Source: Oculina patagonica
Lineage: Eukaryota
Length of the DNA: 64,000 bases
NCBI RefSeq assembly: GCF_052425735.1
Contig: NC_135767.1
Span: 14,260,001 to 14,324,000, forward strand
Reading direction: 5' to 3'
The position numbers were made by a program, and so were the translations under genes. Shown here piece after piece: positions 21,251-61,759 of this stretch; position 1 is the stretch's first letter; each line of letters begins with the position of its first letter. The notes under the pieces were generated by a model. It saw only the letters and a program-made list of their open reading frames with translations, did no database searches and was not told the origin of the DNA.

Positions 21251-24200
21251 ATGGGTGGAAATCAATCTAACCTACCTCCTCGACCTCTGGGTTTTGAATA
21301 TATGTGTATAGCCATTCGTCAAACAGATAAGATGCGTGTCATTCTTGGTACAGATCGTGAGATAAGCATTATCCGCCAAGTTGTTGAAGAATCATGGCCT
21401 AAAGGTATACAAGAAGAAACTTTCAAAATGAACGGTGTTCATCAGTTCAAGTTGAAAGGGAATCCATTCTCAACTGTTGCATCATCAAGTGAAGCAGTAG
21501 ACTCCAGGAAGATGGCAGCAAATGTACTACACAGGCTCTACCGAGATGGATGGAGACTTCTAATGGCTGGTGACTATACGCAAACGACAGACCTTGCTAC
21601 CTGGATCTTTAAGAAAGACCCAGTTGCTGTATGCCCATCCCTTCCATTTCTCATTGTGGGCCTTAGCAGCTGGGATACTTTAATGGTACTAAATGCACCG
21701 ATGGAGCTTCACCAGATGTTCAAAGATGTTGTAGAGAAGTCCTGGCCAAAAGGAATACAAAAATGGTCTTATGAGGGTGATGTTTTGAAGATCAAATTGA
21801 AAGGCTATGCCTGGCATGCTGATGGAGAGGAAACAGTCCATGCAAGAGTGATTCTCCATACTCTTGTGAACGAGCTTCTCGTCCGACAGTGGAAGTTATA
21901 TGGAAATTCTAACCTTAAAAGTTCTGCAAACACCCTGTTTTTCGAGCATGATCCAAACATTGCGCCTGGGCCGCAGCCTATTCCAGCACACTTCACAATT
22001 AGCTTTAACAGCGAAGACTTGCTGAGGCTGATTGGCAATCCAGAGGGCTTGGTGTCTGCTGTACGAAATGTACTCCAAACTTTTTGGTCCAGAGGCATCC
22101 AAAAAGAAGAACGCTATGCCGAGAGCTGGCAGTTTAAACTACGTGGAACTCCATGGTGGGCATCAGGTGAAGAGGCGGTGGACTCGAGATTTCTAGTCCT
22201 AAAGCTGATAGAAGCCATGCAAGCATATGGGTGGAGTGTTGCTGCTGCTATTGACTGCTCAAGAAAAGACCAAGATAAAAGCAGCCTGCTCTTCAGACAG
22301 TCCCAGCCAAGACAATCTCCATTTTTTTGCATAAGCTTGAATGAGACTGACAAACTGCGACTGATAAATGCACCAGACGATGTCACAAAGGTAAGTGTTT
22401 AATATAAATAAAGCAATGCTCAATGGCTTCCATCTAAATGTTATACTTCAAAGCTGTGCTCTTAGAATAATTGCAGGATACCTGAAGGCCCTGTCCAGCT
22501 TTTAAAAGCTTTCATGAAAGCAAAGTTATACAAGTCGCCCAAAGGCAAAAGTAAGTCACCTGTGGCACCCAGGTTCTGCTAGAGTTCACAGCTCTGCACT
22601 CACGCTCTGGGCATTGTTTCTTCAACCCTTTTTTTTCGGTGTTTGGAAATATGACAAAACACTTCCTCTTGTTGACTGACTCAAGAATTTATTCTAGCAC
22701 TAGGGATAGTTATCACTGCAGCTGCCCCCACTGTTAATTTATATTTTTTTCAGTGCATCCATTACTACAGTCAATTCTTTTGCTCAATATTTTGGCTTTT
22801 CTATTTGCTCAATTGGTTGAAAATCAGTTTTCTGTTTGGCACATTTCAGCTCCTTTCAGCTTATATTAATTCTTGTGATGAGCTGACAGAATATTACATG
22901 GTTTCTGGCCCTCTCTTCTTCAAGATGGGATGAGGTTGGGAAATTTAATCAAACTTTCAGGATGAACTGCTAACCCAAGTGAATATTAAACAAAACAAAG
23001 CATTACAAAGTAAAATATTTTCAAAGATTAATGATCAAGTGAATTTAATTACTAGAACGCAACTGCAATGTCTCGACATCTTTTGCTGTAACGAGTGATC
23101 TCAGTGAGGATCACACTTAGCCCGAGACTAGCACTTTTAAGCCCAACTGTTTGCAAGATATTTGGGCTGGGAACCCAAGCCAGCATACTGACTTCACAGC
23201 TGAGTCAAAAATAATGCCGAAAGATTTTCTCACCTCTGCCAATGCAAAAATCTGTCGTGAGTTTTAAGAATCTCGAGAACTCTTTTAAATTCTCTTACAA
23301 GTGTAAGTTACAGATTTAATTTTATCTAACTCAAGTGTGGCATGTTGTCTGGCAAATCTCTGCCAGTGGTGGACTGATTGTCAATGAGTCTTTTATCTGG
23401 TCAAGTAATGTGTCGGGCAAATGGCATAATCTTGCTTATTGTTAATCACAGACAAAGGTTCTTGGACAAATAAGCACTGTAGTCTGTACCATAGTCAGTC
23501 TACTATGTCTGGAGTAAACTGGTTGTTTACAGCTCACACACACGTGTTACGCACTTGAGTTGTCATCATTATCACCCAATCAGATTACGGATAGTCCAGG
23601 CTCCTCGATCTTACTTGTCTTCACTAATCAATTGTCTGGCAAAAATTTTATCACATCTACCGATACTCCATGCACCCACTCCGGATACCCTGTGCGTGCC
23701 CACTTCTAATCAATCAAATCGAGATTTTTTCTGTATACTAAGGAAATACCTTTACCTGTACTCTATACCTATAGAGGGTAGGGGGGGGGGACTATATAAG
23801 GACGGCTGAAACCCTGCAGGGGCTTTTAAATTTTGCTTTCCTTTCTTATGTCTTTCAGCTTTGCCAAGAAGTTATTCAATCTCAGTATCTCCTTGGGGTT
23901 CAAAGGACACAGCTTTACGGCACCAGTCTTGAGTTCAAACTTATTGGCAACCCATGGAGCTGTGGAATCGATGGTCATGACGGAATCCATGGCAGAAATT
24001 TGATATGCCATTTATTTGCTGCTCTGGCAAGCCGCCACTGGAGACCGGTCATATCAGCAGACGTGTCAGCCAAATACATTCACCAAGACAAAGGCGAAGA
24101 TTACCCATTAGATGTGGATAGTATATTCTTCACATATGACCCCACAGCAGTGCAAGCATCAGCACCCGCTCCGTACCCCCAGCCACCGTCTTATGGCTTC

Positions 24201-24386
24201 CTTCCACAGGGTGGACCCGCACCACCATTTGGCGCTCCCCCACCGGCTGGTGCTCCTTTCCCATATGGTGCTCCCCCACCAGTGGGTGGGCCTCCCCCGC
24301 CTTTTGGTGCTCCCCCACCAGTTGGTGCCCCTCCCCCTCCATTTGCTCCCCCAGCCTATCAGTATGGAGCATATCCACCTCCTTAG
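21251..24386 (+). CDS. Uncharacterised 555-aa protein, copy A: N-myristoylation motif, four ~110-aa repeats, Pro/Gly-rich PPxY tail
   Basis: Coding exons 21251-22390 and 23859-24386 (phase 0, GT-AG); likely 5' UTR exon ends at 17766 with acceptor at 21238. Repeat motif D.hRh..(W..GIQ)..FKL.G.PW...R.h...L...GW.h; starts MGGNQS. Confidence 0.9.
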
Positions 24387-35799: not shown

Positions 35800-37850
35800 A
35801 TGGAGAGTCATTACTTTAACTCAGTTGTTTCTCTCGTGGATTCTGCGGTTTTACCCAGTCTTCCTGTCCGTGCTCCGTCCTTGGCACCAGTCTTCTGTCC
35901 ATCGCTGACTGACTTCTCCATCAGCAGGATCCTGGGTCTAGAGAATGACGTAACACATCAAGAGCCAACATGTTCTGGTGAGTCAGACTTAAGCAATTCT
36001 GTAAACAAAGATGTTACTAATGCGGTCACTATGTAATACTAGGATGATTCAGAACCAAAAGAGCCGAGGTCACTGACAATTACAAATTAAGTTTCTAGTG
36101 GTATTATCAAGCTGTTTTCTTCAAAATCACCCTCTCAATCAGTTGAAGAAAAGGAATGAAAGGATTTTATTTTAGTAGCGAGAATTCAGGGCCGTAACTA
36201 GCAAGAGGCAACACGAGGCACTTGCCTCGTCTAGAACCAAAAATTAAAACAAGTAAATGTTTAGCTAGGAAAATAAACCACAGTTGAACAAGACTGACTT
36301 TTAAGAAGAGATACCTTGTAAAATTTCTGAAAATAGCGTTAAGGCATCTTGTGGAAAGATGTGTGTGGAAAAAGATACAATTTACGTGTCTCATCGAGTA
36401 AAAGTCTGAGAAAACGATCGAGAAATGCTTTGAGAACACAAGCCGATGGAGCAGCTTTTTCGAATTTTTTCCTTTTATTTCCTTTCATTTCCTTTCTATG
36501 TCCTATTACAAACGAAAGACTACTCAAATTCACCTCCGTGCACATGTTAAGATTACCGGCTGTTAGTTAAAATCTTACTTCAAAAACTGGAGCTATTTAA
36601 AAATGTTAGTGTTTCATTTTTCATCAACAGCACTGGTGGAATGTCGTCACTCTATTCCGACTGCAAGTCCTCAACACAGCTACAGTGATACCAGCCCACG
36701 ATCATCTCCTTATTCCGACAACACAAGTTCCACCAGCGACTGCGACAGCGATCCCGATCAAGTATCGACACATTCCGAGCAGCCACCGAGGAAGAAGCGA
36801 CAGCGAACGACCTTCTCGCCGATTGAGGTGTGGGAGCTGGAGCGAGCGTACAAGCGGCGGCCATATTTGATGAGTGAAGATGAGGAGGAACTGGTTCAGA
36901 GACTTGGTATCCCGGCTAGAAGTTTGAAGGTGAGTTAGATTTAATTATGTTGTGAAAGTCTTGTGCTACTAAAATTCTGACCCCTGAAAAAGTCAATCAA
37001 ATTATTTATGTGCTGCATTTTGACACCCAAATGAACGGTTTAAAACTAAAAACAATGAATTTTTTCCCCATATTTTGAAGACTTTAAATTGTGTGTTAAA
37101 TCTAGACAATAATCCATTAATTGATTTTTTTTTATTTTGTCATCTATCTGTGTGACAATTTATGGATTTTGTTACAAACATACGCAGAGAAAAGTTAACT
37201 TTAGTTATCAAATCAAGTTTCGCACAATATGAAATAAAATTTCCTGTACATGACCAATTTAACATGTTTTGTAATGTTATCGTACTTCGATTAATTTGCA
37301 GTAAAAACACATAGAAAAGGTTTATCGTCGTATAGAATTTTTTATTCATTTCAATAAAAGTAATTTTACTCGAAAATTATTGTAAAACTTTCAAGGCCAT
37401 GTTGATCAGGTTGATTTTTTGTTGAATGCAATTAACAATTTATTTGTGTTTTCGTTCCAGTATTGGTTCCAGAACCGACGAGCCAAATCAAGAAAAGAAG
37501 GAAGAAAGTTCACATCCGTCCGTCAGACCAGCCCGTCAAACCAGTTTGAGCGTCCTGCCACTAGAGTCATGCCTTGTGAGAGAACTCAGTTTCTGATCCA
37601 GTCCCCTTCAGATCACTGGAAGCAAGCTGAACGTATGTCCTACCCAGTGCTGGAAAACCAGTTAGAAGATAAGTCGCGCAGTCGACCAATCACAGCAGAC
37701 TACCATTACTCGTCATTCAAGTCCAACCAGTTTAGAAGCCGTTCATCGTTCCTGGTTCCCATGTTCCACCCGGACCAGTTCAAGAGAAGACCAGTTGAGC
37801 CCGCAAGACTATCGTACAGCCGTGACTTACGTAGATTCAAGCCGTACTGA
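35800..37850 (+). CDS. Divergent homeobox transcription factor with eh1 (Groucho-binding) motif, 288 aa
   Basis: Exons 35800-35977, 36631-36929, 37461-37850 (GT-AG, 867 nt). eh1 TDFSISRILG; HD KKRQRTTFSPIEVWELERAYKRRPYLMSEDEEELVQRLGIPARSLK|YWFQNRRAKSRK; TATAAATA at 35718; C-terminus RRFKPY. Confidence 0.88.
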
Positions 37851-43315: not shown

Positions 43316-45666
43316 ATGGGTGAAAATCAGATTGACCTACCTCCTCGACCTCTGGGTTTTGAATATATGTGTATAGCCATTCGTGAAACAGATAAAATGC
43401 GTGTCATTCTGGGTACAGATCGTGAGATAAGAATCATCCGCCAAGTTGTTGAAGAATCATGGCCTAAAGGTATACAAGAAGAAATTTCCAAAATGAATGG
43501 CGTGCATCAGTTTAAGTTGAAAGGGAATCCATTCTCGATTATTTCATCATCAACTGAAGCAGAAAACTCCAGGAAGATGGCAGCAAATGTCCTACACAGG
43601 CTCTACCGAGATGGATGGAGGCTTCAGATGGCTGGTAACTTTACGCAAACAACAGACCTTGCTACCTGGATCTTCAAGAAAGACCCAGTTGGTGTATGGC
43701 TATCCCTACCACTGCTCATTGTGGGCCTTAGCTGCTTGAAGAGTTTGATCGTACTGAATGCACCGATGGAGCTTCACCAGATGTTCAAAGATGTCATGGA
43801 GAAGACCTGGCCAAAAGGAATAGAAAAATGGTCTTATAAAAATTATGTTTTGAAGATCAAATTGAAAGGCTATCCATGGTGTGCAGATGGAGAGGAAACA
43901 GTCCATGCAACAGTGATCATCCATACCCTTGTGAATGAGCTACTTATGAGACAGTGGAAGTTATATGGAAACTTCAACCTTAGAAGTAGTGCGAACACCC
44001 TGTTTTTCGAACATGATCCGAACATTGCTCCCGTGCTGCAGCCTATCCCAGAACACTTCACAATTAGCTTTAACGGCGAAAACTTGCTTAGGCTGATTGG
44101 CAATACGGAGGTCTTGTTGCCTCCTGTCCGAAATGTACTTCAAACCTTTTGGGACAGAGAAATCCAAAAAGAAGAACGCTACGCCGAGAGCTGGCAGTTC
44201 AAGCTACATGGAACCCCATGGTGGACATCAGGTCTGGATGCAGCGAACTCAAGACTTCTGGTCGTAAAGCTGCTGGAAGCCATGCAAGCAAACGGGTGGA
44301 GTGTTGTTGCTGCCATTGATTGCTCAAAGAAAACGCAAGATAAAAACAGCCTGCTCTTCAGACAGTCCCAACCAAGACAGTCTCCATTTTTTTGCATAAG
44401 CTTGAATGAGACTGACGAACTGCGACTGATAAATGCACCAGAAGATGTTACAGAGGTAGTTCATTGTGAATGTGGTTTTACCCTTACTTCCCCATGTCAG
44501 TTCTCAATTTCGAAATAAACAGAAAGTAGCCTTTAAAGACAAATTATTAGCACAGTGAAAACAATGCTTAGTGGTTTCCATTTAAATGTTACACTCAGGC
44601 TCTGGGCATTATTTTTTTCAACTCTTTTTCAGCGGTTGGAAGTGATGAAAAACTTCTCTTCTTGTTTGATATAGCTTGCAAACAGGCTCCCAATTATGGC
44701 GGCTCCCTCCCTCCCCCCAGGCCACGCGCGGCTCACTTCACTCCTAGAGTTTCGAATAAATATATGTTTAAACTCACTCACAAGACAGAATATCTGGATC
44801 AATTTAGGTTTCTGGGAAACTGCTCACCTACCCCTCCCCAAACCTAACATTAACCCTTACTTATCGCTTTGGGCAAAATGCTAGGTTTGGGGAGGGGTAG
44901 GTGAGCAGTTTCCCAGAAACCTAAATTGATCCGAATATCTTGACAAACCAATTTTTACGCTGCGCACGCAATATTTTCGGCACCAAAACGTGTAGCCTTC
45001 TCCCCCAATTTTTGCTGCCCGCCTGCTCTACCGCCTATAGAGAGGATCACTTGTACATACCCAAAACTTTTTGACCTTGTTAACTGACTCAATATTTTAA
45101 CATTAACACTTTATGCTCATTTATCTTGTGTTATTCAGCTTTGCCAAGAAGTTATTCAATCTCAGTATGTCCTTGGCGTTCGAAGGACACAGCTTTACGG
45201 CACCAGTCTTGAGTTCAAACTAATGGGCAACCCATGGAGCTGTGGACATCATGGTCATGATGGAATCCACGGCAGAAATTTGATATGCCATTTAATTTCT
45301 GCTCTGGCAAGCCGCTGCTGGAAGCCAGTCATATCGATAGAAGTGTCAGCCAAATATGTTTACCAAGACAAAGGTGAAGATTATCCATTAGATGTGGATA
45401 GTATATTCTTCACATATGACCCCACAGCAGCGCAAGAAACAGCACCAGCTCCTTACGCCCAGCCACCGCCTCATGGATTACTTCCACAGGGTGGACCAGC
45501 ACCACCATTTGGCGCTCCCCCTCCGGCTGGTGCCCCTCCACGGCCATTTGGCGCTCCCGCACCAGTTGGTGCCCCTTCCCCGCCACTTGGCGCTCCACCT
45601 CCGGCTGGTGCCCCTCCCCCGCCATTTGCTCCCCCAGCCTACGGAGCATATCCACCACCTCAGTGA
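43316..45666 (+). CDS. Uncharacterised 555-aa four-repeat protein, copy B
   Basis: Coding exons 43316-44455 and 45139-45666, the same lengths (1140 + 528 nt) as copy A; acceptor at 43303; likely 5' UTR exon ends at 40323; frame intact. Confidence 0.88.
44796..44932. mobile_element. 137-bp MITE with 8-bp TSD
   Basis: GAATATCT|GGATCAATTTAGGTTTCTGGGAAACTGCTCACCTACCCCTCCCCAAACCTA ... perfect inverse |GAATATCT. Confidence 0.85.
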
Positions 45667-57162: not shown

Positions 57163-58937
57163 TGAGCTGATTTACAACAGTTTAATTGTTTGATCGTTTC
57201 CTTCGCTGCTTGTCGTACTGTTCCTCCAGCAGTAAAGAATCGGGTTTAGAGACGAATTAAGATAGGTGAGAGTTGCTGTAAAGTAGAAAGCAATTTCAAA
57301 GTTATTTCCAGACATCTGGCCATAATTCATCAGCATAACTACGACAATAAACGGAACATAGCAAGTAACTAATGCCAACTGCACCCATAATACGCTGGAA
57401 ACTGACTTCTTGTATCGTGCGATATTCAGTAGGATTCTTCCTCCGTTAGGTTGTCCCTGGGGGACATGAACTTGAAGTTGATGATGTCGCAGCTTTCGAT
57501 AAATTTTCGTGTAAGAGAGCATTGAAGTTCCTAGAGAAAGTAATGTAAGGGCAAAGGCTACAGTAAAGGCAATTTGTCTATTCCAAAGGTACATCGATCC
57601 ACATGAAACAGCAATCAGCCAAAAGCAAATTATAACTGAACGGACGCGCCTCGATTTTACAACGTGTCTGTTTCTCAGCCCCAACAACAGGGCGAAGAGT
57701 CTGTCCACGCTTATTGCGCTGGATGTGAAGACCGATACATCGCATAAAATAAAGCTCGAAGCATTATAGACTTTGTAAACGAAGTATATAGCTTTCGAGT
57801 TCATTCCAGTTGTTACAAACGACATTAGGGCTACAGCAAATAGTGGTTGGGAAACAAGTCCAATGCAAAGATCAGTGACCGCCAGATATCGGAACAGAAG
57901 TTTGGTTGGAGGGTGAATAGAAGTCTCTTTGTGAAGAGCAACGAGGATTAGAACATTGCCCAGTGTTGCGTAGCCTGAATTTCAGACATCCCTCTGTGCT
58001 CGCCTGCTCACCAGAAGAGACGTCTGAACACATTTGGCTCTAATGCCGTCCGGTGACGTCACTACACTTTGGTTTTAATTCATGCGGAAAAGTTTCTGTC
58101 GAGGCCATGAAATTGTGAAAGAAAAATCGCTTCAATAAAGGATTACAGGGTAACAAATTGTTTTAATAGTAAACTACTGAAGACTTGAGACAAATGAATG
58201 AGATTTTAATCGACTACAGTCAGGCGCTATTCTTTTACGGAACCGATTTAATCTGAACTGATTTGCTTTATCTAGCGATCAAAATAGCGGACAAATACAA
58301 CACACTCGTAAGTACTTAAATGAATCAATTTAGACGGTTAGAGAGGCATCAAGAAACGGAATTCAATACAAAAATATCCTACTTGACCGTGGGCACTGAG
58401 TTCAGAAATCACTGGCTCATCGAGGCTGCAGGACATAAGCGTCGAGCGGCTTTGTTGACAAAACAAGAATATGTATAAATTTGGCAAAACACTGCATGTC
58501 GAAGCGACGAATGCCGCCAACTTAAAACCTACCGGTTTCCATTACTATTATTCATCCGTAGGTTAACTAATAAAGTAATAAACTCAAGGTAAATGACGAA
58601 TAAATTCATTTCTGGGAAGGTGAACTCTTTCGAAACTCTTCGCAAACGTTTTCAAATTACAATCCTCGCGCGGTAAAATGTAGTCATAATTTCACATAAT
58701 TATGCAAATAATTTTTAAATCAACCAATCAGAATCACTACCCGGTTTTCGGGTAGTGACGTCACCGGACGGCATTAGAGCCAAATGTGTTCAGACGTCTC
58801 TTCTGGTGAGCAGGCGAGCACAGATGGATGTCTGAAATTCAGGCTAAGTGTTGCGGAGATGGATAGAAAAATGTTTAAGGCTGAAAGGAAAGAAAAAACA
58901 CCCGTTAGCCATATATAGATGCGCTTGTTTGGTTCAT
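57163..58937 (-). pseudogene. Disrupted class A GPCR, tandem paralogue of 60866-61759
   Basis: ATG at 58937; +2-nt frameshift after MNQTSASI; 876-bp TIR insertion in TM1; 5-nt deletion after NPILYCWR. Confidence 0.88.
57971..58846. mobile_element. Mutator-like non-autonomous element inserted in the GPCR CDS
   Basis: 95-bp TIRs (57971-58065, 58752-58846; one mismatch) starting TAGCCTGAATTTCAGAC; perfect 9-bp TSD AGTGTTGCG. Confidence 0.9.
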
Positions 58938-60865: not shown

Positions 60866-61759
60866 CTAGCCTGATTTACAGCAGTTTAACTGTTTGATGG
60901 TTTCCTTCGCTGCTTGTCGAACTGCTCTGATCCTCCAGCAGTAAAGAATCGGGTTTAGAGACGAATTTAAGAAGGCAAGAGTTAATGTAAAGTAGAAGGC
61001 AATATCAAAGTTTGTTCCAGACATTTGGCCATGTGCCGCTGGTATAGCTATAATAAGCCACGGAACATAGCAAGTAACTAAAGCCAACTGCACCCATAAT
61101 ACGCTGGAAACTGACTTCTTGTATCGTGCGATATTCAATGGAATTCTTCCCCTGTTTGGTTGTCCTTGGTGGACGTGCACTTGAAGTTGATGATGTCGAA
61201 GCGTGAGATAAATCTTCATGTAGGAGAAGACCGAGCATGCTATAGAAATTATTCCTAGGACAAAGGCTGCAGTGCGGGTAATTCTTATATCCCAAAAGGC
61301 CATCAATGCACATGAAACAGCAATCATCCAAAAGCAAATTATAACTGCACGGACTCGCCGTAATGTTAAAACGTACCTGTATCTCAGTCCCACCAACAGG
61401 GCGAGAAGTCTGTCCACATTTATTGCGGTGGATGTGAAGAGCGATACTTCACATAAAATAGCGCTTGAAGCTTTACGTATCTTGTCAATGTAGTAGATAA
61501 CTTTCCAGTTCACTACATTTGTTACAAAAGACATCAGAAAGGCCGCAAAGAGTGGCTGCGTAAAAAGTCCAACGCAAAGATCAGTGACCGCCAGGCATCG
61601 AAACAAAAGTTTTGTTGGTGGATAAAGAGAAGTCTCTTTATGAAGAGCAACAAGAATTAGAACATTGCCCAGTGATGCGGTGATGGATAGAAAAATGTTC
61701 AAGGCTGAAAGAAAAGAATAAACGCCCGTTAGACATATAGATGTGCTTGTTTGGTTCAT
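60866..61759 (-). CDS. Intronless rhodopsin-family (class A) GPCR, 297 aa, melanocortin/adenosine-receptor-like cnidarian-expanded type
   Basis: Seven hydrophobic segments; GN (TM1), LAVTD (TM2), VDRLL (DRY variant), CYVP (TM6), NSSLNPILY (NPxxY). Confidence 0.9.
   Translation of the reverse strand: MNQTSTSICLTGVYSFLSALNIFLSITASLGNVLILVALHKETSLYPPTKLLFRCLAVTDLCVGLFTQPLFAAFLMSFVTNVVNWKVIYYIDKIRKASSAILCEVSLFTSTAINVDRLLALLVGLRYRYVLTLRRVRAVIICFWMIAVSCALMAFWDIRITRTAAFVLGIISIACSVFSYMKIYLTLRHHQLQVHVHQGQPNRGRIPLNIARYKKSVSSVLWVQLALVTCYVPWLIIAIPAAHGQMSGTNFDIAFYFTLTLAFLNSSLNPILYCWRIRAVRQAAKETIKQLNCCKSG

Follow-up and report, generated by a model that had tools for sequence, protein, structure and literature searches.

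Within the 64,000 nt stretch of the Oculina patagonica genome analysed here (contig NC_135767.1, referred to as the window, with all coordinates given as window positions), a two-exon gene on the + strand at positions 21251–24386 encodes a protein of 555 amino acids (aa), with a candidate lipid signal at its N-terminus, four repeats of a predicted ββαββαββ fold, and a proline-rich C-terminal tail. The protein belongs to a large family which is spread across eukaryotes, and which is both unnamed and unstudied. On a slight balance of probability, we interpret it as an N-myristoylated, single-chain pseudo-tetrameric ring, which would recruit a Nedd4-type ubiquitin ligase via the PPxY motifs of its tail, and would function as a membrane-proximal adaptor. 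A preliminary description made from the DNA sequence had noted an MGGNQS start, four repeats of ~110 aa and a tail with PPSY and PPAY motifs in this region, and all of these features were found at the same positions.

Gene structure, repeats and predicted fold

Exon 1 (21251–22390, +) was read as an open reading frame (ORF) from the ATG at 21251, and comprises codons 1–380, which encode the N-terminal signal, blades 1–3 and blade 4 up to its 26th residue. It is directly followed by GTAAGT, with the GT donor at 22391. The intron (22391–23858, +, 1468 nt, phase 0) has GT...AG boundaries in the sequence, with a pyrimidine-rich tract preceding the AG acceptor at 23857–8, and exon 2 (23859–24386, +) supplies codons 381–555 (175 codons) plus the stop codon at 24384–24386, thereby completing blade 4 and adding the Pro-rich tail. 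The spliced product of 555 aa is identical to P0001, annotated as 'uncharacterized protein LOC144629028 [Oculina patagonica]'. Independent support for the exon junction came from contigs assembled from the sequencing runs ERR9592193 and ERR9592189, since an uninterrupted homologous ORF of 522 aa on these contigs (P0007; contig L001) aligns without a gap across the splice junction K380|L381. Its 77% identity indicates that this ORF presumably originates from a related coral.

The repeats are 106–122 residues in length, and were delimited by AlphaFold2 secondary structure and repeat alignment for blade 1 (21290–21622, +, aa 14–124, ββαββαββ) and blade 2 (21641–21958, +, aa 131–236), followed by blade 3 (21980–22309, +, aa 244–353) and the intron-split blade 4 (22313–24146, +, aa 355–476). 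A BLASTP comparison of the protein with itself returned the identity match alone, and was replaced by off-diagonal tblastn, in which the protein aligned to exon 1 with a shift of one repeat (E 4.7e-33, 27% identity over 339 aa); by this sequence comparison, the presence of four repeats is far beyond chance. Blade 4 differs from blades 1–3 by a conserved insertion in its last hairpin (SADVSAKY(I/V)HQ..G.DYP.DV.S.FF, aa 446–472, ~24054–24134), with S446, D448, S450, K452, D465 and S468 being 82–91% conserved across the four-blade homologues, and this insertion may be a ring-closing element or a binding site.

AlphaFold2 modelling of the whole protein with a 55-sequence alignment gave a score of 86.8 for the predicted local distance difference test (pLDDT) and a predicted TM-score (pTM) of 0.83, and the same ββαββαββ order in every repeat. 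Since disorder takes up ~80 of the 555 residues, a pTM of this height means that the model places all four blades as a single rigid body. Blade 3 was also modelled alone with 144 blade sequences (pLDDT 93.9), and served as query in the fold searches. The predicted models of homologues in the Atlas superpose on blades 1–3 at 1.6–1.8 Å, while the AlphaFold DB models of homologues with ~20% identity superpose over ~500 residues at 2.9 Å, so that the arrangement of the blades relative to one another recurs in both sets of models.

The blade 3 structure was searched against the PDB with Foldseek and against 48,161 chains with VIA-align, and these independent methods ranked the matches in the same order. 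The blade is superposable on the Trypanosoma cruzi protein Q4D6Q6 (PDB 6XYB), which has the ββαββαββ fold, and likewise has the fold of GFRP (family PF06399) and of the KCTD C-terminal domain (CTD). Among the Swiss-Prot models, KCTD CTDs and GFRP made up most of the best 30 matches, and all of the high-probability ones. A Foldseek search of the PDB with the whole four-blade model returned mainly global alignments to MurA and anthranilate synthase that carried no meaning (TM-score ~0.1, root mean square deviation ~20 Å), and these were rejected. The resemblance to GFRP and KCTD CTDs suggested in the preliminary description, for which modelling and Foldseek comparison had been proposed as a check, is thus supported at the level of the fold; the nearest relative is however Q4D6Q6 rather than GFRP, and the predicted structures point to fold-level kinship of the blade with both KCTD CTDs and GFRP.

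In sequence comparisons, the GFRP model PF06399 did not match the whole protein or the single blades, even at E 10, and the single protein used as query gave no match among the PDB sequences. With the profile of 144 blades, Q4D6Q6 was the sole PDB match, but at E 0.1. Alignment of the blade profile with Q4D6Q6 by hhalign gave 93.3% probability (E 2.7e-7) over 63 columns in the second half of the blade, with only four close trypanosome sequences on the Q4D6Q6 side, and the reciprocal search from Q4D6Q6 gave weak matches to the blades which were aligned in register. Taken together, these profile comparisons make Q4D6Q6 a probable remote homologue of the blade.

We counted blades in 263 collected proteins, using a hidden Markov model made from the blade alignment, and found one, two, three, four or eight blades per protein, but never five, six or seven. 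The three-blade class was dismissed as evidence against a four-fold unit, as it is an artefact of fragments or of ORF calls on unspliced coral DNA, with most of its members stopping at least 28 residues past blade 3, at the conserved intron position. One protein of Perkinsus chesapeaki (P0137, 1038 aa) has eight blades in a single chain, which could form two rings. The occurrence of one blade per chain, as in the solved tetramer of Q4D6Q6, or of two, four or eight per chain, fits with a closed four-blade unit. The earlier suggestion that the fused copies form a single-chain pseudo-oligomer is in line with the Q4D6Q6 homotetramer, with repeat numbers of 2, 4 and 8, and with the single-chain four-blade propeller described for Raftlin-2 in a preprint.

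An exhaustive phmmer search identified 1062 clusters of relatives at E ≤ 1e-3, and 528 at E ≤ 1e-10. The named sources include cnidarians (stony corals, Hydractinia and the jellyfish Sanderia), arthropods (a springtail and a copepod), ascomycete fungi, and protists representing alveolates (Perkinsus), diplonemids (Lacrimia) and Provora (Ancoracysta), with flatworms added by the Atlas clusters. A profile of the blade alignment searched against a set of 5.8 billion proteins returned coral fragments only. The structure search with the blade did not detect a family member among the reviewed Swiss-Prot proteins, including those of human, mouse and yeast, and this absence from the reviewed proteins of standard model organisms is probably why the family lacks a name. 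Neither the whole protein, nor its single blades, nor the 55 homologues had an above-threshold match to a Pfam family, and the protein lacked a Pfam match to the BTB/T1 domain. Weak matches to zf_topless, Spo0A_C, DUF488-N3i and DUF4177 were all far below the thresholds, and were discarded. Those to DUF4177 were found in 5/55 family members (best E 7e-4), and may represent either a distant relative of the blade or noise.

N-terminal signal and proline-rich tail

The first seven residues (MGGNQSN, 21251–21271, +) fit the N-myristoylation pattern G-{EDRKHPFYW}-x(2)-[STAGCN]-{P}. Across 55 four-repeat homologues, with identity down to 23%, the initial Met is invariant, while Gly2 is conserved in 95% and Ser6 in 87%. 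The coral protein therefore has a Met-Gly start in a context compatible with N-myristoyltransferase (NMT), which is conserved in its orthologues. Such a Met-Gly start was found in 70 of the 88 complete four-blade proteins, versus 10/53 of the two-blade proteins, and in some homologues a start of MGC or MGxGC is suggestive of dual acylation. A scan of the 555 aa protein did not detect a hydrophobic segment with the strength of a signal peptide or membrane helix. Loss of Gly2 in orthologues had been set beforehand as an observation that would speak against the proposal in the preliminary description, and its 95% conservation is the opposite of this. Judging from the N-terminal sequences, the protein is probably N-myristoylated on Gly2.

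The tail (24147–24383, +, aa 477–555) consists of 79 residues rich in Pro, Ala, Gly and Tyr, with 42% Pro, and contains the motifs PPSY (24183–24194, +, aa 489–492) and PPAY (24348–24359, +, aa 544–547). AlphaFold2 assigned pLDDT values below 50 to residues 479–525 and 541–555, which are thus predicted to be disordered. A PPxY motif within the last 60 residues was present in 30/88 four-blade homologues, and consequently conservation of this motif, which the preliminary description had made a test of its proposal, was not lost. Some of the homologues with PPxY have tails that are not rich in proline, showing that the motif is not a mere by-product of composition, and in the coral protein it is located in an accessible, disordered region. 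PPxY is the standard ligand of the WW domains in Nedd4-family HECT ubiquitin ligases. The tail had also been likened to regions binding ALG-2 and linked to the endosomal sorting complex required for transport (ESCRT), but this part found no support, as a regular-expression scan of the protein did not detect any PTAP, P(T/S)AP, YPxL, PPYP or PxPGF motif.

Proposed function and alternative explanations

In the mechanism that we propose, the protein would be cytosolic and would be myristoylated on Gly2 during translation, with the four ββαββαββ blades packing into one closed pseudo-tetramer, which would correspond to the Q4D6Q6 homotetramer in a single chain and would have the layout predicted for vertebrate Raftlin-2. 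The lipid would put the ring on the membrane, the ring surface would bind a partner, in the way that Gβγ is bound by KCTD rings and GTP cyclohydrolase I by GFRP, and the PPxY of the disordered tail would bring in a Nedd4-family HECT ligase. This would parallel the KCTD proteins, where the BTB domain recruits Cullin-3.

Several observations weigh against this interpretation. The first 20 residues contain a single basic residue and no Cys until C19, and membrane binding by myristate alone is weak; in the absence of a nearby Cys and with one basic residue only, stable anchoring would therefore require a second signal. The closure of the ring, by contact between blades 1 and 4, is a step that we infer. 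Outside animals, the PPxY tail is missing from most four-blade homologues, which means that the fold must have a core function other than the recruitment of ligases. Finally, O. patagonica carries several copies of the family, and not all of these have the lipid signal. One further copy is present in the window (43316–45666, +; exon 1 43316–44455, exon 2 45139–45666), and encodes an intact protein of 555 aa which is 82.5% identical to that at 21251–24386, with a matching two-exon structure and intron position. Its N-terminus reads MGENQI, and with Glu at position 3 and Ile at position 6 it falls outside the myristoylation pattern, as do the Oculina copies P0002 and P0005, which start with MGENQT. 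On the basis of these N-termini, the MGENQ(I/T) copies may constitute a non-lipidated subfamily inside a lineage-specific expansion.

An alternative, which we regard as possible but clearly less probable than a ligase adaptor, is that the protein and vertebrate Raftlin are deep homologues. The protein would then be a lipid-anchored four-blade propeller that organises membrane microdomains, or else endocytic and vesicle sorting, and its PPxY tail would be an addition specific to the lineage. The two interpretations overlap, but this one puts membrane organisation at the core in place of the recruitment of a ligase. In Raftlin, G2 is myristoylated and C3 palmitoylated, and this lipidation drives sorting into vesicles; starts of MGC or MGxGC are found in some homologues of the coral protein. 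The model of human Raftlin-2 has been described as a four-blade propeller of KCTD-CTD-like blades from a single chain (preprint 10.1101/2024.06.14.599007). By language-model features, Raftlin was also the nearest family among the named Atlas clusters, where it held the first three ranks and 11 of the first 100, but the scores were only 0.37, a level that the tool treats as no more than a lead. The taxonomic distributions are complementary, since the taxa recorded for the Raftlin clusters are almost all chordate, whereas the reviewed Swiss-Prot proteins, those of human among them, included no detected member of the coral protein family. Against a relationship with Raftlin, none of the 55 family members matched the Raftlin model PF15250, even with a cut-off of E 10, and Raftlin did not appear in any of the structure searches run, although a direct comparison with a Raftlin sequence or model was not among these.

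A regulatory ring that senses ligands or ions is a considerably less likely explanation. Such a ring would bind a small molecule or ion and would control a partner enzyme allosterically, while the lipid and tail would only set location and turnover. The precedents are GFRP, which senses phenylalanine and biopterin, and KCTD1 and Q4D6Q6, which have ions in the central channel, but there was no GFRP signal in the sequence (no Pfam match, identity 7–10%), and none of the present results pointed to a partner enzyme. Both the Raftlin-like and the sensor alternatives are compatible with the architecture of the protein, and they differ in the part which carries the core function. Lastly, a soluble or released factor with a functionless MG start and PPxY, for which the precedent is the reported secretion of T. 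brucei Q586B2, orthologue of the closest solved relative (PMC10899635), is highly improbable given the conservation of G2 (95%) and S6 (87%) down to 23% identity, the recurrence of PPxY near the C-terminus even in tails not rich in proline, and the lack of a signal peptide.

Elsewhere in the window, two ORFs on the − strand (57172–57825 and 60866–61759) matched the rhodopsin-family G protein-coupled receptor model 7tm_1 (E 1e-16 and 6e-21, respectively). Both cover the model in part, and may be exons of a single gene or fragments. An ORF on the + strand (37419–37850) showed a weak, partial homeodomain match (E 0.0024), restricted to the last 13 positions of the model.

Comparison with known systems

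The preliminary description considered the protein a candidate for an undescribed system, and this holds in so far as the family is unnamed, but precedents exist both for the fold and for a layout of four blades in a single chain. More than 1000 sequence clusters across eukaryotes lack a Pfam model or a studied member, and the fold class of Q4D6Q6, KCTD CTDs and GFRP now gives the family a testable architecture, that of a four-fold ring whose chains could each contribute one, two or four blades. Its conserved lipid signal and PPxY tail bear on membrane targeting and ubiquitin-ligase recruitment in cnidarians, while the family also offers a possible evolutionary origin for Raftlin. We further suggest, as a speculation that is rather unlikely, that this family could be the ancestral pan-eukaryotic stock of both Raftlin and Q4D6Q6/Q586B2, and could define lipid-anchored four-fold rings as adaptors of HECT (Nedd4-type) ligases, forming a membrane-bound counterpart of the KCTD–Cullin-3 adaptors.

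Membrane association combined with PPxY in a disordered region is known from the arrestin-related adaptors and Ndfip, which are PPxY adaptors of Nedd4-family ligases, and from the myristoylated, PPxY-bearing retroviral Gag. The folded domains of these proteins are unrelated to the blades, and the coral protein lacks PTAP or YPxL.

The KCTD CTDs (KCTD1/15, 5, 6 and 8/12/16) and mt-SAF24 resemble the coral protein in fold class and predicted ring assembly, and the KCTD proteins also pair a ring with a ubiquitin-ligase-recruiting module, as we propose here. The CTD of KCTD1 and GFRP have a common fold and pentameric assembly (PMC7618933), and the T. brucei mt-SAF24 (6SGA chains) is likewise a pentamer (PMC13759221). 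In contrast to the homopentamers of KCTDs and mt-SAF24, the coral protein has four fused blades, and whereas the KCTDs have an N-terminal BTB domain binding Cullin-3, it lacks a BTB domain and would recruit HECT ligases via PPxY. GFRP differs in that its homopentamer is free and has GTP cyclohydrolase I as binding partner, and its sequence similarity to the blades is undetectable. Raftlin-1/2 (PF15250) share with the coral protein the predicted single-chain four-blade propeller and a Gly2 lipid anchor, the latter being probable in the coral protein, but have no HMMER-level similarity to the coral family, and the likeness in layout rests on the description in the preprint.

The closest solved relative is Q4D6Q6, with Q586B2 as its orthologue in T. 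brucei. In these proteins, ββαββαββ monomers assemble into a propeller-like homotetramer, and their occurrence has been described as limited to trypanosomatids and bodonids, with Q586B2 reported to be a secreted immunomodulator (PMC10899635). The UniRef cluster of Q4D6Q6 is named 'paraflagellar rod component', and a protein of that name was noted to resemble the KCTD CTD (10.1101/2024.06.14.599007). Q4D6Q6 (PDB 6XYB/6XYD) is a single 116 aa blade, without an MG start or a PPxY tail, that assembles as homotetramer. The coral protein instead has four diverged blades fused in one 555 aa chain, and its family is found across eukaryotes, whereas Q4D6Q6 has been described as restricted to kinetoplastids, suggesting that the "kinetoplastid-specific" virulence-factor fold of Q4D6Q6/Q586B2 has relatives far outside the kinetoplastids.
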